A stretch of 64,000 nt of DNA from Klebsormidium nitens (lineage: Eukaryota; Plantae; Klebsormidiophyceae). Positions 12,737-29,396 of the stretch are shown in pieces. How positions within the stretch are numbered: the first letter of the stretch is position 1; each line of letters starts with the position of its first letter. Location: contig DF236950.1 of the NCBI GenBank assembly GCA_000708835.1, forward strand, positions 7,508 through 71,507, written 5' to 3'. The translations under genes and the position numbers were made by a program. The notes beneath the pieces are model-generated. The model was not told where the DNA came from. It worked only from the letters and a program-made list of their open reading frames with translations, and searched no databases.

Positions 12737-12745
12737 TTGTTCAAC
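12737..12745 (+). repeat. Left 9-bp target site duplication TTGTTCAAC
   Basis: Identical to 29388-29396 and immediately abuts the terminal GAG of the element. Confidence 0.9.
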
Positions 12746-12790
12746 GAGCTATTTCTTAGGATGAGCCTTAGGCCATGAGCGTTTGAGCGC
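12746..12790 (+). repeat. Left terminal inverted repeat (45 bp, degenerate)
   Basis: The inner 30 bp ATGAGCCTTAGGCCATGAGCGTTTGAGCGC match the reverse complement of the right end at 26/30, and the terminal GAG is conserved. Further TGAGCG hexamers and a TCAGATTTGAGC/GCTCAAATCTGA inverted pair lie at 12796-12847. Confidence 0.8.
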
Positions 12791-13409: not shown

Positions 13410-14105
13410 TTAACACATCGTAATGACACTCCGAACGTGGTACCAGACCGCCTCGTTTTCTCTCAACTGTACAAACTCCATCTGGGGTTGGTAGATCCTC
13501 ATCTTCCTCCTATTTTCCCCCTTTGCCACCGTTACCTTGTGGCCCATCGCCCATACGACCCTTTGCTCGAAGTCCCCTCCCCAGCATCCGCTTCGCGACA
13601 TTCTGTCTACGTAAGTATCGAATTCAGTCAAATCGTCCTCGTCCCGTAGCGCTTGGTACAATTTTTCCCACGTTGGCAATGGTCGCCGTTTGCTCGGGGG
13701 CCTCGAGGACGTTATCAACTGGGGGGGGATAGGCCTATTCTTGTGGTCACGCAGGTAGGCAACTATCGTTGCGCGCACCTTCAACCCCTCTTTCTCTAAG
13801 TCGATTGGGAGACGACCAGCCCGCAGCTGTGCAGCAAGCTCCTCTCCCCCTCCTAGGGGCTCTCCGTTCAATGTTGCCACCACAAATGCAGTCATGAAGA
13901 AGCAGTTCATGTTATCACCGCTTATTGCGAACCGCTTGTAATTGCGCAAGTCCACCGTCCCCTCCGAACTTCGCACGACGATATCATCGCTATCTTCGCT
14001 GTCCGATGACTCGGACAGAGTCACAGGCGGCTCAGCTATTGATCTTGCCGGTGAGGACATGATGGAACCCGAGACTGCAACCGATGCGATGACCTTCGTT
14101 AGCAT
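13410..14105 (-). CDS. OTU-family cysteine protease (deubiquitinase-like) carried by the MULE
   Basis: Cys loop ISGDNMNCFF (cf. GDGNCLF), YVDRMSRSGCWGGDFE (cf. Y..RM...G.WGG..E) and C-terminal WYHVRSV (cf. HY.SV). Could be a separate gene or the terminal exon of the upstream gene. Confidence 0.75.
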   Translation of the reverse strand: MLTKVIASVAVSGSIMSSPARSIAEPPVTLSESSDSEDSDDIVVRSSEGTVDLRNYKRFAISGDNMNCFFMTAFVVATLNGEPLGGGEELAAQLRAGRLPIDLEKEGLKVRATIVAYLRDHKNRPIPPQLITSSRPPSKRRPLPTWEKLYQALRDEDDLTEFDTYVDRMSRSGCWGGDFEQRVVWAMGHKVTVAKGENRRKMRIYQPQMEFVQLRENEAVWYHVRSVITMC

Positions 14106-14446: not shown

Positions 14447-17400
14447 TCAATCCTCTGGCTCCTCTATCAGGTAATCGACAAACTTCAAGGCCTCGGCATG
14501 GCTAGGGGCTGGTGACTCCTCACGTGGCGCTCTCTGGCTGCTCTCGGTCGCCTCATCGCTGACGGCCGACTGCCCACCTTCACCCCCTTCGGCCGGCCCT
14601 TCTCCGCCCTTCTCCCCCCCCTTATTCCGCTTCTTCCGTTCTTTCTTTTCTCCCCCCCCTTCCCCCTCGGACTTTCTCTTCCTCCCCTTGGTCTTCGTGT
14701 CCTCAGCAGGGCCCTCTCCACCGCCCTCCGCCGTTCCCTCCGCCGTTCCCCCCTTCTCTTTCCTCTTCCGCTGTTTCTTCTCTTTGGGCTCGCTCCCTTC
14801 TGCCTTCTCTCCCTCTTTTTCCGCCGCAACAGGACCCTTCCTCTTCGCGGGCTCCTTCTTAGCGGCTGCCGCCGCACCGCTCGCTGCGTCTTTCTTTCCA
14901 GAGCCTGACGCGGCGCCTGCTGCCCCCTTCTTTCCCCCGGCGACTTTCCCCGACTTGCCCCCCTTCCCAGCCGCACTGGGACCCGTCTTCTTCTCCGTCA
15001 CTTGCTTTTCCCCCGTCGAAGCTACCTTTTCCTTCCCCTTTCGAGATGTCGCCGTCCCGGCTGTCTTCGAGGAGGGTGCTGTGGTAGTCTCTGCGGGGGC
15101 TGCTGGCAGCGGATCGAACTCGTCCGGAAGCTTTTGCCCCGCCCGGTACGCCATCGCCCGCTCGGCGAACGTCATGTCGGTGGGCGTGGATCTGATCCTC
15201 CGCCCCTTCGACCCCATCCACACATGCAGCCTGCGGCTAAGTACCGACACCACCAGCATGTTTCTCCTCAGCAGGGCAGCTGTCGTGTACCCGTTCTCCT
15301 CCCCTAAAACCACAGCTACCGCGCTCCCAGTCGCAGAGGGGACGGCGCCCTGTACATAGCAGATGCACAAGCTCCATCAAAAGTCTGAAACAGAACAAGG
15401 CATCGTAGGCAGGCTGTGACACTAGGGCAGAAACAAGTACTCGATGAATAAGTAGCCGAAGTCAAAGCAGACTAGAAACAGATGTTTATTTCCCACACCG
15501 CAACCATCGCAGGCAGGATGCGACACTTTACCACAGTCGTCAAACAATTTAAGACACTGCTCGTGCATAAGGAACTCATATATCATCGTCATCGAAGTGC
15601 TCCTGCCCCGCTTACAAAACATCACATGCAGGGTGCGACACTATCCAGCGTGAGGAAATACAATCACCTCGAGAATGCTGTTGATGGTCTCCAGGGGCCA
15701 GCTCTCTGGGTCGGCTGTGCACGGACTGGTCTGCAATAGACAAGGAGAGTGGCATCAGTTTCAGAAAACCCTTTACTACAAAAGCATCGCACGCAGCATG
15801 CGACGCTTTTACAACTTCCACCATCGAAGATTTGCAGTGGGCCGAGCTGCTTGTAAGAGGACCTACCGTGAACGTGCCGGCGTGCTTGAACTTCTTGTGG
15901 GTCAGCCCGAACCCGTACTGCTTGGACTGGTCGGGGAGCTCCAGCTCGGACCCGACGGGAGTCAAGTAGACGACCTGGTACATCGTCCCACTGTCTCCCC
16001 ACTTCTCGAACTTCCCGAACCCCTTCTGAGAGTAAATAGACATTCGTTAGGACTTAAGTGAGTTCAAGCTATCTTGATGAGGGCGGGACCTGTTATGGAG
16101 CTTCTTGCACAGTGTACATGACAAACAAGCAAGACAAAACACATGGCGAGCCCCAGCTTTTATACCTAGAGGGGAAAGCTACAAAGTACAGCAGCTGATC
16201 AAACTCTCCATAGTCAAAAGCAATCATAGTGAAGACGGAAAACAAACAAGACGACACACGGCAAGCCCAACACTTTTTAAACTACAGAGGAAAGCTACAA
16301 AACACAGCAGCTCGTAGAGGTCAGAGCAGTCTCTAAAGTTGGTAAAAAAGTTGCGCTTAACCTACCTCCAGTTTCTTGGGGACCAGGCAGATGACCCTGC
16401 GGGCGACTATCTGTAGACCGGGCGCAATCCAGTCGAGCGGGGTGTCGCCCGGAAGAACCGCGATCCCCACTGTTCCGTCAAACCTGAGAAGGTCTGACAT
16501 CAGCTGTGTCGCCGCCCTGACTGACGACTCGAGCGCGCGCGCGTCTCCGACCACCTCCCTAGCGCACGCAGCTAGATACATAACTAGATGGACCGGTCGC
16601 TCCGTCAAGTCGAATTCCTGGCTGCTGGAGGTCACCCAACCCAGGCGGTCTGTGATGGCGGAAATGGGGGGGAACTTCTCCCCAACTACCCCCTGATGCG
16701 CTGTGTCCGTTCGGACCGCCATGACAGCCAGGCGGGAGTCCGGGCGGATTTGGAGGACGATTTTGCGGTCCCATAGTTCCAGGGAGCGGGGGGGGTTTAC
16801 AATCGACTCCACGACCGAGGCTGACAGATAGGGGGCGGCCGGGAGCTTCTCCTTCTTGGCCAGGGTCCGCGGTTCAGCCCCCCTGTCCCAAACCCGGATC
16901 GTGGGGGTGGCTTCGTCACAGTCCACCTCCCACCGGCACCCCATTACCGCTTCCCTGAAGGGCGTTGTGTCCAGGTAGTCCAGCTCTTAAGGTCCCACTG
17001 CGAGTACATGACTTGCTCGTCGGCCACGTAGTCACGGTCTTCGTTTTTGAACATTGTGCCGGCGGGTTTCACGAAACCAGCGCGCGTGATGAGCGCGTGC
17101 CGCAGCTCCGGAACTGGGATGACGACGAATTGTTGGATGACGAGTTTGGGGAGGTTCTGCAGCGCCACGAGAGTCTGCAGCTGGTCGGGGGTGACCTCGA
17201 AGGTGCGCGACGGGAGGACGGTCCTGAAGTAGCTGCATAGAAGGAAACTTGAGTGGTAAGGAAGGGTGTTGCATGCAGGGTGTGATACTTTAGTTCTAAT
17301 CATTGCCAAACCCCATAATACGTAAAAGGCGGGACTACTTCGGTTGGTCAAGCCTGAAATTGACGTGTCGCATGCAGGGGGCGACACTGTAACCCACAAT

Positions 17401-20400
17401 GCTTTTTATTCATAAAAGGAACGACTGAAAATATTTTATTGATCAAAAAAGAAAACACTTTGACACGACACGCTAAGAGCAGACAGCCGGTATCATTCTA
17501 GTACGGAAACCGAGTTGGTACAATTCAAACTGAACGAAACAGTTTTAATGATGTTAGCATCGCAGGCAGGATGCGATACTTCCGGGAAATACGCTCAGAC
17601 AGCAAACAAACACTCTGACAACTTTACACAACCAAATTCTTGAAGTACGATCGCCAGATATTGATTCAACAGCAGCTTCGTACCTGGGTAGATTGCACAA
17701 ATGTACAGAACAGATTTCGAAATCCACTAATTACTAACCTGAGCGTCATTCGGTCTCGCAAGGAGGCGAGCGCTGCAGGCTTGATGTTTCCGCTGAATGC
17801 GGACACGGACGCCGCCCACCAAAACGGCCTCCCCGCCGGCCCGTCCGGGGTCTGCATCCACAGAATGGCCTTGCCGAACTCGTACGGATCGTACGCTCCG
17901 GCGAAGTGGAGGTAGTCCTTAGCCAATGCAGGCGAATCCCCCCTCTTTCTGGTCTTCGGCTTCTCGTAGAACCCGAAGTCCATGAGCTGGGTGACGACAG
18001 CCTCGCACACCGCGAACAGGACCCCCATCCACTTCACCCAGGACTTCAGATTGGATCGGGATCGGTCCAGGCCGGTGATGTGCTTGAAGGACTCTCCGTC
18101 GAGTTCGCAGAGAAGCACGACGACTGCATCCCAGGAGACGGGCAGGTGCTTCATCGACAGAACGTCGAGGACGTCGATGTCTGGCACAACGAGCTCAGGC
18201 TGCTCGAGCATGACCCATCTTTGCCAAATGGGCTCCCAAAAGCCGCGCTTCTCCTTTGACAGGTTGGCGCAGTGCACCCTCTTCAGCGCCCACACAGACC
18301 GGGCGGACCCGAGTTCGCCGACTTTCTCCGCAGGGAGGCTCAAGGTCGACTTGTCCATGAGCAGCAGGCTGTAAAGCATCAAGAAATAGTAAGCCGTCTT
18401 TTCAATCGCGTCTAAACGTCAGATTTGACATAACATTCTTTCGTACAGAAGGACAAATCACAACAGTATTTCCATGACACTCAGTACAGCCAACAAGAGT
18501 AGACAATAGCATTATGCTTGCAAACTCATTATTAACCGGGATCCCGAGTTCCAATGATCTCCACGGAAAGTAACAGCAAGAAACACAGAAAACGAGTTGG
18601 GTTCTCACCCGAGGCTGGGCTTCAAGCCCACAGCAAACACAATCCCGGGGTAGTTCACTCCTTGCTCTTTGAGCTCTGCTCGCAGCTTAGTCCACTTCCC
18701 AGTGTGTTCGCCGTACAACGTGAGCATCTGCATCGGTAAATAAGTATCGCACTCAGCATGTGACACCTCCACAGCAATCGAGTACAGGAGAATAAACCTC
18801 GACAAAGAGACAGACCCAGACAAGAGAACAATTCCGCGCATACAGTGTATCCGTCCTACAAGGCTTGTCTCTCTTAACCAAATGGGAACTCGAAGGAAGA
18901 AAACAACAAGGCGTCACAGCCTGCCGGCGACACTCCAGGAGATAGGGGATCTGCTTTAAGCTGTGCAACAGTCTATAGGCTAGATATCCTTACGTCATTG
19001 AAATTCTAAAGGTTGAAGAAGCACAGCATCACATCCTGCCTGCGACACTCTCTGGTATAAAATTTCGAAAGGTTGAAGAAGCACAGCATCGCATCCTGCC
19101 TGCGACACTCTCCGAGATAGAATTCCAAAGGTTGAAGAAGCACAGCATCGCATCCTGCCTGCGACACTCTCAGTAAACTCACCGCTCCGCTGACGATCTT
19201 CTCCATCTCTTCTTCGGTCTTGTCGTTGAGCTGGTAGCAGGCGTAAACCTCTTGCGCCACAGTCTTCTTGGAGTTGAACTCGATGTTGTTGTCGTTTATC
19301 TGCCGGGACATAGCCGCGACGTCGTCCATGTTGTCAGCGGTTAGGCCGACCAAGAACGTTTGGAAGAAGATGTCCTTGGTAGTCTTTCCCGTGTCAGCCT
19401 TGTCCTTGGCACGACCCCGTTTGTATCCCTCCAGCCTGGAAAGAAATGGAATCAAATCAACAACTAATTTCCTAGCATATTTAGCACAGCGTACAGCCAA
19501 TGACCTTTGGTACAAAGCAACGGAGGCAGCCATGCCGAGTCGCTCATTTTGTTGTCGGAACGTATGGCAAAGACTGATTCGCAACCAACAACATACAGGA
19601 TGGAATACAGGGCTAACATCACCTTGGTTCTGGTTAAGCTTCTTTTCTATATTCTGTGGCAATGAAATCGTTGAATGCAGTCAAGAAACAAAGGCGAGGC
19701 AACTTTAGCATAGCGAGCGCTGACCACTGCAGTATTTCACAAATGTGCTCACCTCGAGTTCCCATCCACAAGGAACAGCCACCTCCCCACCACGTTCGCC
19801 TTAAGCCACTCCCCCTTCGCCTTCACTCCGGCGTCCTCGCTCTTGCACATCTGCCCGACCGTCTTCTCAAACTTCTCTAGATCCGCCCGATCTTCGACAG
19901 ACATCGCCGCCTTGTCTTCTTCGGTGATCAAAACGTCTTTCCCAAACGGTCTGATCACTGCCGTCACGTCCCCCCTCTCCTTGATGTGGCCCTCCACCCA
20001 GATCCTCTCCCCCGTCCTGACCTGCGCAGGCGTGGTCATCCTTTCCGTGATCCGCACCGCCTTGGGCCGTCCGTTGGCGTCTACCTCAGGGTGCACTACA
20101 CCAAACTTCTCTGCGTCGTTCCCGTTTTGCAGCATGCACATCGGGATGTCGAAGTGCAGCTTGCCCCTCCCATCCCAGTCCTTTGGATAGGCGGCGGTTG
20201 CTTCCATCAGAGACGTCATCCGGCGCGCGACCTGATGCACGCTTACCAGGTCGGTGAGCTTGCGGAACTGCAAGGGTTGAGAAACGTAGTTAGGTGAGCG
20301 AATTGAACCAATCAGCACAGTAAATATTTCGGGAGAAGGACTACACCATCACATGCTGGAGGCGATACTCTCAAAAGAGGTCTAGTAAAGGGTAACTCAA

Positions 20401-22074
20401 GGAGGCATGATGAACAAGACACTGCACGTGGACTATCAGCAACCTTATCCACATTCGTTTACACACTCCGCAGCGATTTGAAAGGAATCCTATTCTGTAC
20501 CAGGTGTTTGTTATAAAAATAGCTAGCTCTGAAACGGGCGTGACCAGCTACAGGCCCCTTACAAACGCCAACACGTTATGCCAACAACCTATCCTAGTAT
20601 CACAGCCAGGATGCGACGCTGGGAGAACACAGAATAGCAGAACGACGAATACTTAAGCATTAACTTGCGCACAGTTCATGCTGGCAATAACCCTAAGGAC
20701 ACCCCTTTACAAGATATCACAAAAACACGAGAACATCAGTGGGCAATGGTATCACAGGCAGCATGCCACGCTTCAGACTACAAACAGCCAGTATGCAGAC
20801 TATCTGAAGGTATAAGAAGGACATGACAACCTCAACAATCAAAAGCGTCACAGGCAGCATGCGACGTTCATACAAAGACCATCCCTTTGTACCCCTTTGC
20901 AGTCCCCATCTCAAGTCTCAAATGAAGTAGAGAACCTCAGTTAAGTCCACAGCATCTCATGCAGTTTGCGACGCTTCTAAACTCAAGCAACATAAAAAAT
21001 CTACTAAAATGTTATCTAATCTATCAAACCTACCTCTTCAGCATTCAGGCCCTTTGCCTCTTCACCCCCCTTCCCCTCCTTGAATTCCTGAGCCAGCTTC
21101 CTGATGTACTCCATCCTCTCAGGGTTGATCTTCCCTGACGGTCCGAAGAAATCTCCAGAGCCCACCGCCCCAGTTGGTGCCTCCTTCTCCCCTCCGTCAG
21201 CAGCCTCTGACTTGCCTGCGGCATCCCCCTTCCCTGACGTTCCCGCCTTCTTTGCACCCCCCTTCTCTGGGGGCTTGGCAATAGGAGGTGTCTCCTTGGG
21301 TGGTGCCTTGTCTTGCTCCGCACCCCCCCCCACCTCTTCCCTCATCTCTGCTGAAACTTCCCCACTTTTCCGCTCTTGCGCTGCGCTAACCTCGCTTCTC
21401 TTCTTCTCGATATCAACTGCGGAGGACTCCACCCCTTCAAGGCTTGACCTTCCTTGCAGCCCCTCCACCTGAACCTCAGGCGGTTCCTTAGTTACCCCTT
21501 CTCCGGTTCCCTCCGCCTCCGCCTTGTCTTCCTTCTTCCCTAACTCAGGATCGTGCGCCTTTTGGGTCGCGCCCGTTACCGCATCTAAGGCCGACAGCTC
21601 ACTGACCGCGGGCGGGTTTTTAGTCGGGGGGTTTTCAGGGTTTACCCCCGAAACGTCAGCGGCCGCCCCGCCCCCCACTTCCGTCGGCGCGCTCGCGACT
21701 TCGAGCCGCGCGCCCGCTCCACTATCCAAAACCTCCAGGCCAACCGGCTGATCTTCGGCGGCGATTCCGGCGGCCGCGCGGTCACCGGAACCGCCTTCTG
21801 CGGCGGCCGCCTCCGCTCGCTGCTCGCCTACCCCACCCTCGAAATTTGACTCCGCTTCTGCCACCACCGAGGGCATTGCAGCAGGGTTAACTTCCGAGAC
21901 TCCTTTCCCGCCTTCCGCATGAGCGGATTCCGCTTCTTCGTTGCCCCTATCCCCCCGCTTCAGCTTGGACCTGGGCTTCCTCGTTCCTAGCGGCAAGTCC
22001 TCAGGGTCAACCTGTGCAGCTTCCCGCTTTGGCTTCTTTCCACGCCCCATACTCGTTTCGCTTCGGTTGTTCAC
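14447..22074 (-). CDS. Large multi-exon MULE cargo protein: low-complexity N-terminus, ParB/Srx-like domain, possible degenerate DNA-MTase fold, Lys/Gly/Glu-rich C-terminal tail
   Basis: Exons bounded by AG/GT at about 22074-21034, 20267-19753, 19435-19181, 18730-18608, 18364-17738, 17233-16366, 16028-15866 and 15350-14447. Splicing creates FLVDGNSRLEGYKR...SRQINDNNIEFNSKKTVAQEVYACYQL. One apparent 1-nt frameshift at ~16986. Confidence 0.75.
19006..19172 (+). repeat. ~60-bp tandem repeat x3, each unit containing one 25-bp palindrome
   Basis: AAAGGTTGAAGAAGCACAGCATC(A/G)CATCCTGCCTGCGACACTCTC occurs three times in an intron. Confidence 0.92.
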
Positions 22075-22908
22075 GACACTATCCGGGATAGAACTTCTTG
22101 GCCCTGGGCCGCTTCGCAGGTTCTTTCCAAACGGTGAAGTACGTGTCGAGACTGTCTCACTCTCTGCTGTGGTATTCTGAGAATCCTGGTCTGTTTTTTT
22201 TTAGCGAGTGATCCTAATTACAAGCCCACTCCGAGAGGCCATACAACCAACAGGCGTCGCAGGCAGCAGGTGACACTAGCTTAGCTAAACCCCAGATGCA
22301 ACGATCGCCTCTGAGCGTCGCACCCCGGATGCGACGTTTTGAGAAACTTTGAGGAGCTCACGAACGACAGCAAGAGAGAAGCGTCCTAGGCAGGATGCGG
22401 CACTAACCTACGAAGCCAGCTGCACAGAGGTTTCAGACAAAGGCGTCACAGGCTGTGTGCGATGCTTTTACCTCTAATGCATTGAAAGCAGTTTGAGCTC
22501 GCATCTAGGCATTCGCTTGCAGCCCACAAGAAAGCATCGTTTTCATAAACGATACTTTGCTGAAACGGCCGTATTCTCCGGCGGCGCCCTGAAAACCAAC
22601 TTCAAAAGTTGGGAAAAAGGACAAATGACGCTTTTCTGAAACCTTTGAAGCATGACGCTAAATGTGACGCTAAAGCGGAGCAACTTTTGCGAGATCAATT
22701 TGTTATCCGTGACTACTTTAGCGTCACACTTTACGGCTGCCTCGCGGCTTATATGATTTTCTTACATTTGTTGTTTCCACCGACAGCCGCAAAATCCAGT
22801 CGGGTGCTTGACTAATGATGTTCAGGATGCGTTTTTTCTAACCATATATTACTACATTATTCTACTGACATGCAAGTTGGCGCATGCACGTGTTTCAAGC
22901 GAACATGA

Positions 22909-22985
22909 CCAATCAGAATGGTGCAAAAGGATGGGCACATCCTTACCAGCCAATCGGAGCATCTAAGGATGTTCGCGCGTCCAAT
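22909..22985 (+). promoter_or_regulatory. Three CCAATC boxes in the divergent promoter region between the cargo gene and the transposase
   Basis: CCAATC at 22909, 22950 and 22981, between the two divergently oriented genes. Confidence 0.5.
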
Positions 22986-23996
22986 CACATTCGAGCAACC
23001 ACGCAGGGGTGCTCGTGCTTGCTGCTGCGATCATAGAATTCCGCGAATGTCACAAACCCTCGGCGCCCATCTCGCTCATTCGTAGGTTTGTAGGTTCGAC
23101 GATCGGGGCGCTTCTCGGCAGTTTCCGCACGTGTGCTGACGTCAGCACGCAATGGCATCAGGTAAGTTGCAGCATCGCATGTCGCCTACGATACTGTGCT
23201 CTGAGAGCTACTGTTAACTGTGACCACCTGCGAAGTTGCTGTCAGACAGCTTGGATCGGATCTTTTGACGAAGCATCGCATGCAACATGCGATGCTACGA
23301 GATAGACGGTGCTACAAACTACAGATTCATATGGTAAAGCTGAGCCCCGTACAGTAAGTCACGTACCAGTAGTTACTGAACTATTCTTTGCCCGAACTGT
23401 GTGCAGCTCTCACCGCGTTCAAGCCGCCACGGCAAGGACTGACAGTTGGTAGTCGGCTTTCCGGGGACGGGAAGCAGGCAACTCAGCGGGCCGATCACGG
23501 CCAGCGTTCAGGTGAATGAACACATTAACAGCTACTTTGAATCTAAAATTTATTGTTTATTGTTCAGGGGGTATTTGTTTTCGTTTCAATTTGTTGTCAC
23601 GATTTGGGGTAGCAAAAGTGCACTTCTTGCTTTCGTTTTAAAGGGCTCCGTATTGCTCATTGTCATCTTGAATCTTTTGACTCCTTTGATTGTTTCGTAA
23701 AAGGTCCTTGACTATAATGAACATTTCGACTTCTTCCGTTATTGATTTAAGGGTTAAAATAGAGAAGTGTTTTGAAGTTAGATTCTAATTTTGGTTGGTT
23801 GATTCAAACGAGAAATCTCACTATACCAAGCTTTGTAGTTCGAAGAATTAAAAGGATGTTGGGCTTGATACTATTTCTTAGTTTATCAATATTAAATTGT
23901 TTGAACTAGCAAGCACGAGGATTCAGCCAGGAATACAGAGACATTTACCGTTTTACCTTGTCCGTAGCAATTATGTTAAGCTAATTTTGGTGCTGT

Positions 23997-26900
23997 GCCA
24001 AGCAGGATCCGAAGGAAATGGCGGGGCACGTACCGGTGGTGCCTCGCCATCGAGGACGCATTCGGACTCCGAGTTGCCCCGCAATCCAACGGCGCAATCC
24101 AAGGAGATGCCAATGGTGGAGATCACCAGCGATAACGGCAAGGTGTACTCCACCATTTGCGACGGCGATGAGGCGATCGTCTTCGAGCGGACGCTAAAAT
24201 CCAAGTTTCACGACGNNNNNNNNNNNNNNNNNNNNNNNNNNNNNNNNNNNNNNNNNNNNNNNNNNNNNNNNNNNNNNNNNNNNNNNNNNNNNNNNNNNNN
24301 NNNNNNNNNNNNNNNNNNNNNNNNNNNNNNNNNNNNNNNNNNNNNNNNNNNNNNNNNNNNNNNNNNNNNNNNNNNNNNNNNNNNNNNNNNNNNNNNNNNN
24401 NNNNNNNNNNNNNNNNNNNNNNNNNNNNNNNNNNNNNNNNNNNNNNNNNNNNNNNNNNNNNNNNNNNNNNNNNNNNNNNNNNNNNNNNNNNNNNNNNNNN
24501 NNNNNNNNNNNNNNNNNNNNNNNNNNNNNNNNNNNNNNNNNNNNNNNNNNNNNNNNNNNNNNNNNNNNNNNNNNNNNNNNNNNNNNNNNNNNNNNNNNNN
24601 NNNNNNNNNNNNNNNCAGCCATTCCCGGTTTGGCTGTACAACCATTTGTTGAAAACTTTCTCTCGGACATTGACACGTCACAGGAAATCTGAAAAACATT
24701 GTCGTCGACTACAGTTGTTTGTGATGATTGGATGAACACATTGAGATACCCAAAGTGATTGCATGCTTTTATTCTAGACTTGGGTATCATCGTAAAATTT
24801 ATTTGTTTACGGGTCCGATTGTTGGACGTTTGTTTTGATCCATCAAAAACACAACTCGTACATTAACCAGGCATATTTGTTTTTTTATACAGTCTAGTAA
24901 AAAGCGTGCAGCCGCTCGCTCGGATGGACAAAATAAGGAGGACTATGGCGAAGGGCCGGGTTCTAGCCGGGGCAAACACGAGGAGCAAGTACGCGGGTCT
25001 AGATATTGCAAAGAAGTTGGGGTTTCCCTTCGTACACAAGCTTTTCCTCGCGGAACAGCAGTTGCAGCCGACGTCGGAGGTCCCGATGGTGTTCATGATG
25101 ACCGTACAAGGCCGGGGGTCAGGCCTGCACGTCGCTAGAGAGATGAGCGTTCCGGGGAGCGACTTGTACTTTAGCACAGCTTATATAGACGCCCAAAAGG
25201 TCACCGCGGAAGACGAGGTGTTGACGCGGATAAGCACGTACTCCCACGTTCAGAGGAGGATGCTAACGATCGCTTCGGCGCTGATAGAGTCGGAGAGCAA
25301 GAAGAACATGGTTGCGTTCATGAAGGAGCTGAAAAAGATCTGCCTAACCGGCTGGCCTGCGGGAGGGCAAGATGGGGAGGGTTTCTGGGAGGCAATCGCG
25401 CCATTCGCGCTGGATTTTTGGAGGTTGTGCTCCGACGCTGCGGAGGGGCCTGCGGCAGCGTACAGGGCGGTGGTCTCTAGCGGGGAGGGTCGGGGGGCGC
25501 TCGTCCAATGCGAGATGCACTTTAAAAAGGACCTGAGGAATGCGGAGCACAACCTGCCGGAGGACTTGCGAGGTCACCACAGGTCCTTGGTGAGGATGTG
25601 GTTGGTGTCCGAGACGGACGAGCAGTGGAAGTCGAGGTTCCACGCTCTGCTGGACTGGTACGAAGCAAAGTTACAGAACAACAAAACGGCGAAAAGAAAA
25701 ATGTGCAACTGGGCGGCGTTCTGGAGATTCAAGTAAGAACGATTTAGACAGCGGCTTATTCCCATAGTATACTAAACGATCTGTGTTTGTTGTCAAGCAG
25801 TCATCGGGCTATTGTGTCAGACGAACGTTTGTTTATAGAGATGTTTCTGTGCTCTTGAAAGGTAGACAGAATGTTGTATGACCTGACTTGCAGGATCCGA
25901 CTGTTTGAATGAGCAAAAATACCCAAGAAAATTGTGCGTTTTTGATACGCTGAGGTTTTCAAGAGTCTCTGTCCAACACTGAATATTATGACTCCGAGCT
26001 GGCAGGATGCAAGGAGCGTCGCATGTTGAGTGCGATGCTTGTGATATGTTTGTCGTGTTGGGCGCTGACTTTGGTATTATTTTCGTAACTCAAACCTTCA
26101 GGTCCAAGGAGCTGAAGGCGTGGTCGATGCCTGAGAACGTGAAATTTTTGGAGGAGGAGTGGGTAGCAGTGAATCCGTCCGCTAATTTGGCCGAGATCGT
26201 GAACGCTATTTTCTGGTTCTTGGTGGGAGGGAAAGGGCCGTATCTACCAAGGGGGGAGGTGATTCTGAACGAGGGAACGGGCGGCGTGTTGCAAATCGCG
26301 CGAACAGTGGAATTTGAGGAGACGGGCTACACGGGGCAGGGCCCGACGCTAGAGGAATTGCGAGCGAGGGGTGAGGAGAGGAAAAAAAGCGTGGAAACGC
26401 AACGGGAGAACGCACGGCGGATGTCTGGAGCGGCCCTAGGAGATGTCGCGAGAGGGGCGGGTCTTGCGACCGGGACGGTTGGGGGTGGGGTGAGGAACGT
26501 GGTCTCAAAAACGGCGTGGGCGGCATCAAGTCCAGGATCCGCGGGGGTGGAAAGCACGCACAGACATGACCGGGTCTTAAAGGAAGTGGATAACAGAACG
26601 AGGGAGAAGGGAAAGGGGAAGCAATCTGGAGCAGAGGAGGGTGGAGAGGACGGAGGGGTCAAGGGCAGCAGGTATTACGAGGAGCTGGCGATTGGAATTT
26701 CGGAGGGGAAAAAACAGCTGGAGGATCTACCGCTGGAGGAGAAAGAGCGTGTAGTTGAACTGCAGAGGATGGCTGCTGCTGGAGCAGCCAAGGGGGCGGC
26801 GGGCGCGAGACCGCAACCAGCCGACACACCGGGCCCAAGTAATGCGAATACGCAGCAGACTGGGGAGCAGGCAAAAGAAGCAGCAGGCCCGAGTGCTCCT

Positions 26901-28534
26901 AGGAGGGAAGAAGAGCCACGAGTAGCGGAGGCAGCGGGGCCTAGACAAGGTGAATGGGAGGACGAGGACGAGGTGATGGGAGAGGGTGGAGAAAGAAGTA
27001 CTGAGGCGATAGGGGCGGCTGATGAGGCAGAAGAAGAGCTAATCCGGAGGAGAGCAGTAAAACGGCTGCAAGAGAAGAATTTGGGGAGAAAGGCGTCCTG
27101 GTCAGATGAGTTTGGAGCTGAGGGCTCGGAACGGGGGGGTGCGAAAGAAGGGGGTACGAAGACGGGGTCAGAGAGCGTGGCACTGCCTGGGGACGAGAAA
27201 TACGAGGAAGGAGAATGGGGGGTTTGTCGATTGAAGAAAGGTGATGGCTCAGGGTGCGTCGGGGTAAAAATCGGCGGGGGAAGATGCGAGACAACGAGCT
27301 TTGAAGCCCAGAGGTATCACGGAGCATCGGGGGTGTTGGTGTTGATGCGGTGAGTGCGTCGACTCAAGCTGTAGTACTGAGTTTCGGAAAGTCCTGCAGC
27401 GTACGTGGTACTCGACCGGTTGATTTGATCATATCGCTGTCATAGGGTCAGGATTAAAACATGTACTAGTCTCGAGCTTTCATTATTACTTGCAATTCGG
27501 TGTACTTGAATCTATCAGTGCCGAATCCTTGGCCACATGATTCTCGATAGCATCACATGCAGGATGCGATGCTTAAACGTATCAACTATTTTGTGCACAG
27601 CCAAGCGTTCCGCCACTTCGGCCTACAAAACAGGCAGGGAGAGTACGAGAACACGGGCATGAAATACATGTCTTACGCGAAGATGTGCATTGACGGCCCG
27701 TGCGACAGTCGCCAAGGAACCAACAAAAGTCTCGTGGACAAGACGACGCCGGAAAAGGGGAACGAGGTGGGGATTTTCGAGGGGACTCTCCTGAGTGACT
27801 CGGAGCTCGCATGGCTGCGACAAGCGGGGTGGAAAGTAAACCCGTTCTACATCATCAGCCTACAAAAGGTCCACTCGGAGCAAGTGACGTATAAGGGGCA
27901 GGTCAAGCAACGGGGAAAACCGCCCCGGAACGACGGGTTGAGCGACGTCGAGAACGAGTCGGAACGGCAGCGGCGGCAACGGGAGGAGGCTGCTGCGCGA
28001 CGAGCGGAGAGGGAATTGGAGAGAGAGAAGAAGGAGGTGGAGAAGGAGATGGGCAAACGGCCGAGCGAGCGTCCAGAGGGAAGGAAGGTGAAGAAAGTGG
28101 GAAGGGTGATCAGAGATATGGAAACGCGGCTGGAGCAGGCGCTGGAGATGGAAAGTACTGTGCACGTGGAGAAGTACGTGCAAAGGGAGTCGATTGAAGT
28201 TCTGGTCGAAGAAGCCTCAGCGCTGTTTTCGACGAGAATAGGAGGGAGGTACAGGGTTACGATAGACGCCGCCCCGAGGTGTGACGAGATTTGTCCGGAG
28301 TACGTGGAGATGAAGGAAAAGAAGTCGGGGAGCTGGGTCCACTGCAGACACGTGTACGCGGTGCTGCGGGTGGGACTGAGGCTGTTCGACTTCACTGACG
28401 GAGACGACACAGGGGTGCCGTTGATCCACCAGGCTACGTTTTCGGAAAAGGAGCTTAGATCGATTCTGTCACAGGGCCTAGACGTCAAAGCGATGGGGGG
28501 AGAATTAATGGAATACGCAACAGAAGAAGAGTAG
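23997..28534 (+). CDS. Mutator-family DDE transposase with C-terminal SWIM zinc finger (multi-exon; 5' part spans an assembly gap)
   Basis: Exon ~24910-25733: FSTAYIDAQK (D1), IASALIESESKKNMVAFMKELKK, FALDFW (D2) and QCEMHFKKDLR (CxxH). Exon ~26101-27350: NPSANLAEIVNAIF (catalytic E). Exon ~27601-28534: RCDEICPEY...VHCRHVYAV (SWIM). Start codon not resolved. Confidence 0.88.
24216..24615. other. Assembly gap (400 N)
   Basis: Run of N. Confidence 1.
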
Positions 28535-29192
28535 TGCTAATGATGCTACGACCGCAGCTGGTCCTAATACCAGCATTTGTTTTTGGCAGTCTGTACATAA
28601 ACTGAACGGTGTATATGCATGAACTAGTGATGTGCCACTTGCTTGTAAGCAGTTGAATTGAAGGGAAGTTTGAATGTTTTCGATAACGCTCACTGATATC
28701 AAATGATACATGTATGTGTATGTGTGTTGCTTGTCAGCCTTAGGTATGTCAGTAAACCCAATGGAACACGCAAATGGATGAACGGACTAAGAGTCTGTAG
28801 AATGTCAGAAGTTGGTTGTCCTGCCAGTTGTCCTAAAAAGGCTCGCGCGCAGGCGACAAACTTAGCTGCCACCCGGCCGCCGCGACCGACCTTAAGGTGG
28901 AGGTACTGCGCTCATATGCAATATAAGTGTGGGTGAAAGTAACAGTAGTAACCAATGTACACATTAGCTATCTTTTAATCACCAGGGATACTTTATAAGG
29001 TTTTTTTCGCGGCGGTTACGGGAAAATGCAGTCACCCATTACAGGCGCTAAAATATACGGAAGAATTTACCGTATGGTCATAAGCATCGCATGGTGGATG
29101 CGATGCTTGAACAGCAATGCTAAACAAAAAGTCCGACACCATATGTCAACGAATCAATGATGCAACCACGGACGTAAGTACAATCTAAAGGT

Positions 29193-29342: not shown

Positions 29343-29387
29343 GCGCTCATACGCTCATGACATAAAGCTCATACATAACATAGACTC
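29343..29387 (-). repeat. Right terminal inverted repeat (45 bp, degenerate)
   Basis: GCGCTCATACGCTCATGACATAAAGCTCATACATAACATAGACTC, the reverse-complement match to 12746-12790. Confidence 0.8.
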
Positions 29388-29396
29388 TTGTTCAAC
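29388..29396 (+). repeat. Right 9-bp target site duplication TTGTTCAAC
   Basis: Identical to 12737-12745. Confidence 0.9.

Follow-up and report, generated by a model that had tools for sequence, protein, structure and literature searches.

A spliced passenger gene among private palindromes in a Klebsormidium nitens DNA transposon, and its candidate ParB/Srx-like module

Introduction

Can a transposon of a eukaryotic alga encode a protein that reads the element's own DNA through a relative of the ParB/Srx domain? This question is raised by a 64,000-nucleotide stretch of the Klebsormidium nitens genome (contig DF236950.1, positions 7,508 to 71,507; hereafter the window, in which all coordinates are counted), where a spliced gene on the minus strand appears to sit in a 16.7-kb DNA transposon bounded by terminal inverted repeats (TIRs). 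A reading made from the letters of the window, hereafter the sequence-only reading, had joined two exons of this gene into a ParB/Srx-like domain lying among parS-like palindromes. The explanation that we tentatively favour, at a confidence a little short of even, is that exons 1 and 2 of this passenger gene encode a diverged ParB/Srx-like module that reads the palindromes of its own transposon. The splice junction, the conservation of the protein and the palindromes are described below, followed by the evidence on the nature of the domain.

Accessory genes of a comparable kind have been described in giant Plavaka transposons of red algae (Petroll et al. 2025, bioRxiv 10.1101/2025.02.11.637652; Curr Biol 2025), with homologs in Mutator elements of Chondrus crispus and in Zisupton elements (10.1101/2025.02.11.637652). 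Among them, Plavaka accessory gene 3 (PAG3) is weakly ParB-like at its N-terminus (HHpred best match 7BNR_B, E=0.29), carries a putative 2-oxoglutarate (2OG)-oxygenase domain and adjoins tandem inverted repeats, and was suggested by its authors to bind and modify the element that encodes it (10.1101/2025.02.11.637652). In Ectocarpus, the element Sola1-1_Ec32 encodes, opposite the Sola1 transposase, a 1,104-aa protein combining a ParB-like part with a DNA methyltransferase, and for this protein, too, binding and modification of its own element were proposed (PMC12477816). Since these red and brown algal transposons have been published, ParB-like cargo beside private inverted repeats is a known idea. 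Hence the novelty seen by the sequence-only reading, which knew of no ParB-like cargo in Mutator elements, does not hold, given the Plavaka, Mutator, Zisupton and Sola1 cases (10.1101/2025.02.11.637652; PMC12477816).

Results

Splice junction between exons 1 and 2

The region concerned comprises two exons and the intron between them (a slash marks an exon boundary):

19753..20267, minus strand: exon 1, 171 codons plus 2 nt, with acceptor cag/TTC at 20267 and donor AG/gtgagc at 19753
19436..19752, minus strand: intron 1, GT-AG, 317 nt, splitting the Arg codon of DGNSR
19183..19435, minus strand: exon 2, 1 nt plus 84 codons, LEGYKRG...IFFQTFLV...MSRQINDNNIEFNSKK..AQEV...NDKTEEEMEKIVSGA

Exon 1 makes up the conserved domain, whose C-terminal end is ...GEWLKANVVGRWLFLVDGNS(R). 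Read directly on the minus strand, it runs into its donor as ...GGG AAC TCG AG/gtgagc at 19753, while exon 2 starts at 19435 with ...ttccag/G CTG GAG GGA TAC AAA CGG, behind the pyrimidine-rich 3' end of the 317-nt intron (...tccatttctttccag). Splicing 19753>19435 restores an AGG codon for Arg and yields ...RWLFLVDGNSR-LEGYKRGRAK...IFFQTFLVGLTADNMDDVAAMSRQINDNNIEFNSKKTVAQEVYACYQLNDKTEEEMEKIVSGA, the peptide across the junction being ...GEWLKANVVGRWLFLVDGNSR-LEGYKRGRAKDKADTGKTTKDIFFQTFLVGLTADNMDDVAAMSRQINDNNIEFNSKKTVAQEVYACYQLNDKTEEEMEKIVSGA. The peptides and the splice coordinates quoted in the sequence-only reading are confirmed by this direct reading.

The junction was judged on comparative sequence evidence. 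A word search with exon 1 recovered eight related fragments at 62-94% identity, and an exhaustive profile search added nine more diverged ones, which brings the set to P0001-P0017, from other assemblies, at 31-94% identity to exon 1; those that extend as far as the exon 1 terminus all break off at ...DGNSR, with intron read-through or a stop behind it. Equivalents of exon 2 are found 300-500 bp downstream of exon 1 in the related loci L001, L003, L004, L006 and L009. Furthermore, the profile search yielded one full-length protein of 939 aa (P0018, named 'hypothetical protein KFL_011670020, partial [Klebsormidium nitens]' at NCBI), an NCBI-annotated paralog that is ~30-35% identical. Mapped onto its own scaffold, P0018 has an intron at the same codon and in the same phase (AAC ACC AG/gtgagt ... 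ag/G TGC CTG), with the spliced reading FLIDGNTR-CLGWKLA, so that the same junction is used in an independently annotated paralog. Judged by these comparisons, the 19753>19435 junction is real and conserved, beyond what chance would give.

Selection on the protein family and its age

Synonymous sites between copies are saturated, with a proportion of synonymous differences (pS) of 0.54-0.80, and non-synonymous differences amount to 0.13-0.25 among the close copies (window, L001, L003 and L004). For these close copies the ratio of non-synonymous to synonymous divergence (dN/dS) is ~0.1-0.3 in exon 1 and in exon 2, the non-synonymous divergence being 3-10 times below the synonymous one. Such values indicate that both exons are under purifying selection and that the family has been maintained as a protein over a long time.

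The gene is also old in this lineage, since conserved spliceosomal introns are common to paralogs at ~30% identity. All relatives recovered by word and profile searches are Klebsormidium-type, and searches of 50,697 phage records, viral contigs of IMG/VR, 185,579 prokaryotic genomes and JGI metagenome contigs (two scans) revealed no relative outside the lineage. The absence of relatives from these collections and the shared old introns argue against a recent prokaryotic or phage origin; the lack of viral and prokaryotic relatives also speaks against the prokaryote/phage-type NTPase or clamp of the sequence-only reading.

Palindromes around the gene

The palindrome RTCRCA-N7-TGYGAY has 27 matches in the window, compared with 1.9 expected, and they are distributed as follows:

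15402..29104, strand not applicable: palindrome array, 25 of the 27 copies, each of them intronic or intergenic within the element

The two copies that lie beyond the element are matches with 1 mismatch. Every related locus among L001, L005, L006, L007 and L009 has its own recurrent palindrome:

L001: TCGCTTC-N3-GAAGCGA, 8 copies
L005 (the KFL_011670020 scaffold): TCCCGT-N3-ACGGGA, 11 copies
L006: ATCGCCTT-N3-AAGGCGAT, 8 copies
L007: TCGCAAT-N3-ATTGCGA, 6 copies
L009: CGCAAT-N3-ATTGCG, 4 copies

The parS-like palindromes that had been noticed around the gene are borne out by these counts, and the picture of a gene set among palindromes private to its element is solid.

Two further features of the palindromes were observed. 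The letters TCGC occur within the half-sites of four of the five related loci, and in L005 several palindromes lie inside the intron that splits the DGNTR codon.

Is the conserved domain a ParB/Srx module?

Domain searches were run exon by exon, on the exon alignments and on the contiguous paralog P0018. The motif DGN[ST]R is found without exception in the window and the 17 fragments compared with it, 18 family members in total, as well as in P0018, within a core [FS][LV][VI]DGN[ST]R followed by xxG ([LCFM][ELT]G[YWF], the first residue being missing in the L001 row). The Gly of xxG is kept in seven of seven exon 2 sequences, and the motif as a whole fits the ParB pattern DGxxRxxA/G; the family-invariant residues of exon 2 are G3, one Ser, one Asn and one Gln. 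With respect to the ParB motif GERRxR one Arg is kept, and from ENxxR the Asn alone remains, its Glu and Arg positions being taken by I/V and N/S/L/V.

The family was then compared by hhalign with a reference profile of 101 canonical ParBs, extracted from 120 bacterial loci that had been fetched with a degenerate IENLQREDL-box pattern. The query was the family profile with P0018 as master and the exon 1 and exon 2 fragments as separate rows. This comparison gave a score of 23.3 and a probability of 3%, and the score exceeds those of 200 out of 200 column-shuffled profiles (13.5 +/- 2.2, maximum 21.3). The best alignment places the family strand, hSxxhN, xxQE and NDKTEEEM opposite VPaiI, IENLQRE, PiEeA and glTqeeiA of ParB, and with a relaxed alignment threshold FLVDGNSR falls opposite elIAGERR. 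This register is the one predicted by the ParB hypothesis (VPxxh, ENLQR facing IN[DE]xx, and the start of the helix-turn-helix (HTH)).

Structure was predicted with AlphaFold for two pieces. The model of P0018:170-420 has a predicted local distance difference test score (pLDDT) of 61.5, and of ~50 in its exon 2 part, the 18-row alignment covering the exon 1 part only; that of window exon 1 alone reaches a pLDDT of 75 and a predicted template modelling score (pTM) of 0.68. The sole positive lead among the fold searches is a look-up in the ESM Atlas with residues 230-420 of P0018, where the ParB_N cluster set makes up 39 of 100 feature hits at a score of 0.91, with DUF6551 appearing too, and 6 of 10 structure rows are ParB_N, HTH_ParB, KorB or DndB at template modelling (TM) scores of 0.37-0.45 over 106-128 aligned residues. 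These values for P0018 are under the usual thresholds, yet they fall on the family that had been proposed beforehand. The same look-up with window exon 2 alone gave no usable match.

Several results weigh against a ParB/Srx-like module that reads the palindromes. Hidden Markov model (HMM) searches of Pfam, PHROGs, NCBIfam and PDB sequences returned no ParB/Srx family even at E<=10 for the exons, the alignments or P0018, so that the profile searches suggested in the sequence-only reading, run here exon by exon and on the paralog, ended without a ParB match. In hhalign, the probability for ParB is only the 3% given above, two of ten unrelated real bacterial families from the same loci reach 22.5-22.6, and exon 1 by itself falls on ParB in another register that cannot be reconciled with the predicted one, while a diverged but genuine ParB, that of phage P1, obtains 96% with the same ParB profile. 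Given this low probability, the similar scores of unrelated families and the 96% of P1 ParB, the profile evidence for ParB is not significant. The P0018:170-420 model found no ParB match by Foldseek, VIA-align or Atlas shape search, a negative result that is limited for P0018 since no alignment depth supports its model over exon 2; the exon 1 model matched no known fold (best Z 2.6). The AlphaFold and Foldseek comparison proposed in the sequence-only reading hence gave no ParB match for either the P0018 domain or exon 1, and fitting the family to ParB would require an insertion of ~95 residues in the N-domain. Moreover, the palindromes could be read by the transposase, and a frameshift in exon 5 may have disabled the window copy.

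Some weaker matches and ideas were set aside. Pfam DUF5726 on exon 2 (E=0.082), the HTH region of P1 ParB (1zx4) with the exon 2 profile (E=0.24), and GCN4 and kinase matches in the HMM searches were regarded as noise. The 'GER' of exon 1 (RTGERIW) had been placed opposite GERRWRA by hhalign but was rejected as a ParB motif as it is absent from diverged members, and an internal duplication relating the middle part of exon 1 to exon 2 was rejected at an hhalign score of 11.4, compared with a shuffle mean of 11.7.

The ParB/Srx fold of the sequence-only reading is therefore not confirmed. The DGxxR-type motif and the ESM Atlas lead speak for it, whereas HMM searches, hhalign and AlphaFold give no confirmation, and we consider the assignment a reasonable but unproven hypothesis whose chances are about evenly balanced. 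The further proposal of a ParB-like nucleoside triphosphatase (NTPase) or DNA clamp is unlikely, with only one Arg of GERRxR and only the Asn of ENxxR kept. Indeed, a cytidine triphosphate (CTP)-dependent clamp or NTPase would be unlikely even with a ParB-like fold, because the CTP-binding arginines and the Glu and Arg of ENxxR are missing.

Remaining exons of the gene

A tblastn comparison of the related locus L001 with the window gives a collinear six-exon model at 22050-16366 on the minus strand, to which the following features belong in addition to those listed above:

21034..22050, minus strand: exon 0, ATG at 22050, low-complexity and Lys/Glu/Gly/Ala-rich, ending ...GCT GAA GAG/gtaggt in phase 0
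18728..19182, minus strand: intron 2, with five palindromes in all
18609..18727, minus strand: exon 3, MLTLYGEHTGKW...GIVFAVGLKPSLG, 71% identity to the L001 equivalent
17739..18368, minus strand: exon 4, ~210 aa, 58% identity to L001
16366..17232, minus strand: exon 5, SYFRTVLPSR...

The gene is accordingly predicted to have at least six exons, and it probably continues further 3'. Exon 0 is homologous to the first open reading frames (ORFs) of L001 and L004; the start codon at 22050 is a putative one, and the frame is open further upstream too. On the 5' side of the first ATG of exon 0, the sequence SPFGKNLxxGPGPR is conserved in the window (~22100-22150, minus strand), in L001 (~1830-1870) and in L004 (~640-680), and other copies may start translation at a more upstream site, or the stretch may serve as a conserved 5' leader or as an element of the promoter.

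No known domain was found for exon 4 in Pfam, NCBIfam or PHROGs. Exon 5 shows an apparent 1-nt frameshift near 16986-16990 (minus strand), its L001 counterpart being a single 307-aa ORF, which points either to a mutation that disables the gene or to a mistake in the assembly. In intron 2, three to four tandem units of ~60 bp, with one palindrome apiece, are present at 18886-19179; local amplification of a binding-site-like motif is one possible cause of this arrangement.

The transposon around the gene

The element is delimited by its repeats and carries a second gene next to the one studied here:

12739..12790, plus strand: left TIR, imperfect, ~52 bp, local alignment score 41
29343..29396, minus strand: right TIR, whose reverse complement pairs with the left repeat
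24867..28531, plus strand: transposase-like gene, several exons, divergent and head-to-head with the studied gene

The local alignment score of 41 between the TIRs compares with a shuffled maximum of 24. No matching target-site duplication was found, the 9 bp outside the TIRs being different (TTCGCTCTT vs CCCCGAGTT). The pieces of the transposase-like gene are 31-43% identical to the gene that lies head-to-head with KFL_011670020 in L005. They contain CxxH and SWIM-like Cys/His motifs spotted by eye, and the ORF pieces have no MULE/Transposase_mut match in Pfam; membership of the element in Mutator is hence no more than plausible. The accessory gene family is multi-copy according to the word and profile searches, and no ParA-like ORF was found among the ORFs of the element. 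The TIRs, the transposase-like neighbour and the synteny of the exons with L001 bear out the earlier view of a spliced eukaryotic gene within a transposon.

Other features of the element were observed as well. An assembly gap (Ns) lies at ~24200-24600, in the region of the transposase-like gene. An ORF at 13410-14105 (minus strand), inside the TIRs, has an OTU/cysteine-protease-like look (...GDNMNCFFMTAF... then ...CWGGDFEQRVVWAMGH...) and no Pfam match, and a long ORF at 14447-15370 (minus strand) is of Lys/Glu/Gly/Ala-rich low complexity, with a composition like that of exon 0; the latter may be part of a third gene of the element.

Discussion

The explanation that we prefer, without giving it quite an even chance, is that exons 1 and 2 of a passenger gene in a transposon encode a diverged ParB/Srx-like module reading the element's own palindromes. 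Here the conserved core, hhFLVDGNSR/LEG[YW] followed by a strand, hSxxhN, xxQE and a helical region, would most likely be a very diverged ParB/Srx-like DNA-binding module and then helices. The protein would probably bind the palindromes of its element as a dimer, a dimeric reader being suggested by the fact that the motifs are spaced palindromes. Binding would mark 'self' DNA and bring there the uncharacterised C-terminal two thirds of the protein (exons 4-5 and beyond), with a purpose such as countering silencing or assisting transposition, for which the nearest analogy is VANC of the VANDAL elements. A CTP-gated sliding clamp would not be expected, the canonical CTP residues being lost. A bolder extension, which we find doubtful, is that a ParB-derived protein and its private parS-like palindromes co-diversify between subfamilies as a self/non-self DNA code. 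With such a code, each subfamily would confine its action to its own elements, for example in anti-silencing, in bridging or in the control of transposition, and a bacterial centromere-binding module would in effect have been redeployed in algal chromatin.

It is also possible, although we lean against it, that the gene is a real conserved accessory gene whose domain is not ParB/Srx at all, its DGNSR...N belonging to an orphan fold and recalling ParB by chance; in that case the palindromes would have another reader, such as the DNA-binding region of the transposase or a host factor, or would act as hairpins. The failure of HMM, profile-profile and structure searches to single out ParB is what such a fold would give, as is a fairly confident exon 1 model (pLDDT 75, pTM 0.68) without a match, and the arginine patch and the Glu and Arg of ENxxR are absent. 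A chance resemblance fits less well with an ESM Atlas look-up that landed on ParB_N, DUF6551 and DndB out of thousands of possible families, with a best hhalign alignment in the predicted register, and with the ParB-like reading that independent authors gave to analogous algal proteins (10.1101/2025.02.11.637652; PMC12477816). Very improbable, by comparison, is a recently acquired bacterial or phage ParB that binds CTP or ATP, hydrolyses it and, once loaded at the palindromes, clamps or cuts the DNA or spreads along it. Palindrome arrays resembling clustered parS sites and the DGxxR-type motif would suit a protein of this kind; however, the residue losses in GERRxR and ENxxR are family-wide, no relative was found among the 50,697 phage records, in IMG/VR or in the 185,579 prokaryotic genomes, the introns conserved at ~30% identity are old in the lineage, and the profile that easily recognises P1 ParB does not recognise this family.

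Whether the window copy itself works is a separate matter. That it is a decaying pseudogene without a full-length protein, in a family that may function, is a serious possibility to which we give somewhat less than an even chance. The apparent 1-nt frameshift that splits exon 5, where L001 has one 307-aa ORF, and the lack of an ATG in the conserved stretch upstream of 22050 are in line with decay; exons 0-4 are nevertheless open with intact GT-AG sites, and the frameshift could have arisen in the assembly, which has an N gap in this element. In any case decay would bear on this copy and not on the nature of the domain, for which the diverged ParB/Srx-like module remains our preferred explanation.

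Among known systems, PAG3 is similar by description: it is an accessory gene of a 17-19-kb DNA transposon, ParB-like by weak remote homology, with arrays of inverted repeats beside it. It differs by its putative 2OG-oxygenase domain, none being found in the window gene in Pfam or NCBIfam; furthermore, the present element belongs to a streptophyte alga and has its palindromes scattered over introns along its whole length, instead of one adjacent tandem array. The Sola1-1_Ec32 protein, again likened by description, is a large protein opposite the transposase of a giant DNA transposon with a ParB-like N-terminal part, but it belongs to another transposon superfamily, and no N6/N4 methyltransferase (PF01555) was found in the window gene or in P0018. 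Indeed, neither a 2OG-oxygenase nor a methyltransferase was matched in Pfam or NCBIfam by exons 4-5, by L001 exon 5 or by the 939-aa paralog.

The bacterial ParB-parS system (ParB_N, PF02195) shares with the window gene a strand ending in (D/G)GxxR, a small residue, then a further strand and a helix carrying a conserved Asn, together with clustered short palindromes on the same DNA molecule. In contrast to that system, the present gene is a eukaryotic spliced one that shows no significant sequence or structure match, lacks the CTP arginines and the catalytic Glu, has no ParA partner in sight and would need the ~95-aa insertion in its N-domain. VANC, the anti-silencing protein of the Mutator-like VANDAL elements of Arabidopsis, is likewise an accessory protein whose element-specific short motifs are concentrated in the element's own non-coding DNA, and the VANDAL motifs vary between subfamilies; no sequence relationship to VANC was found, however, and the motifs of the present element are spaced palindromes.

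Together, the locus is a further case of the recently described algal transposon accessory genes and not a new principle. Its value is that of a well-delimited test case, mainly through its subfamily-specific palindromes, and the Klebsormidium subfamilies, with distinct palindromes and diverged protein copies, form a natural specificity series. If the reading is true, the idea raised for the giant transposons of red and brown algae would become directly testable. If the protein does read its own palindromes, streptophytes would have a second, independent transposon self-recognition besides VANDAL/VANC.

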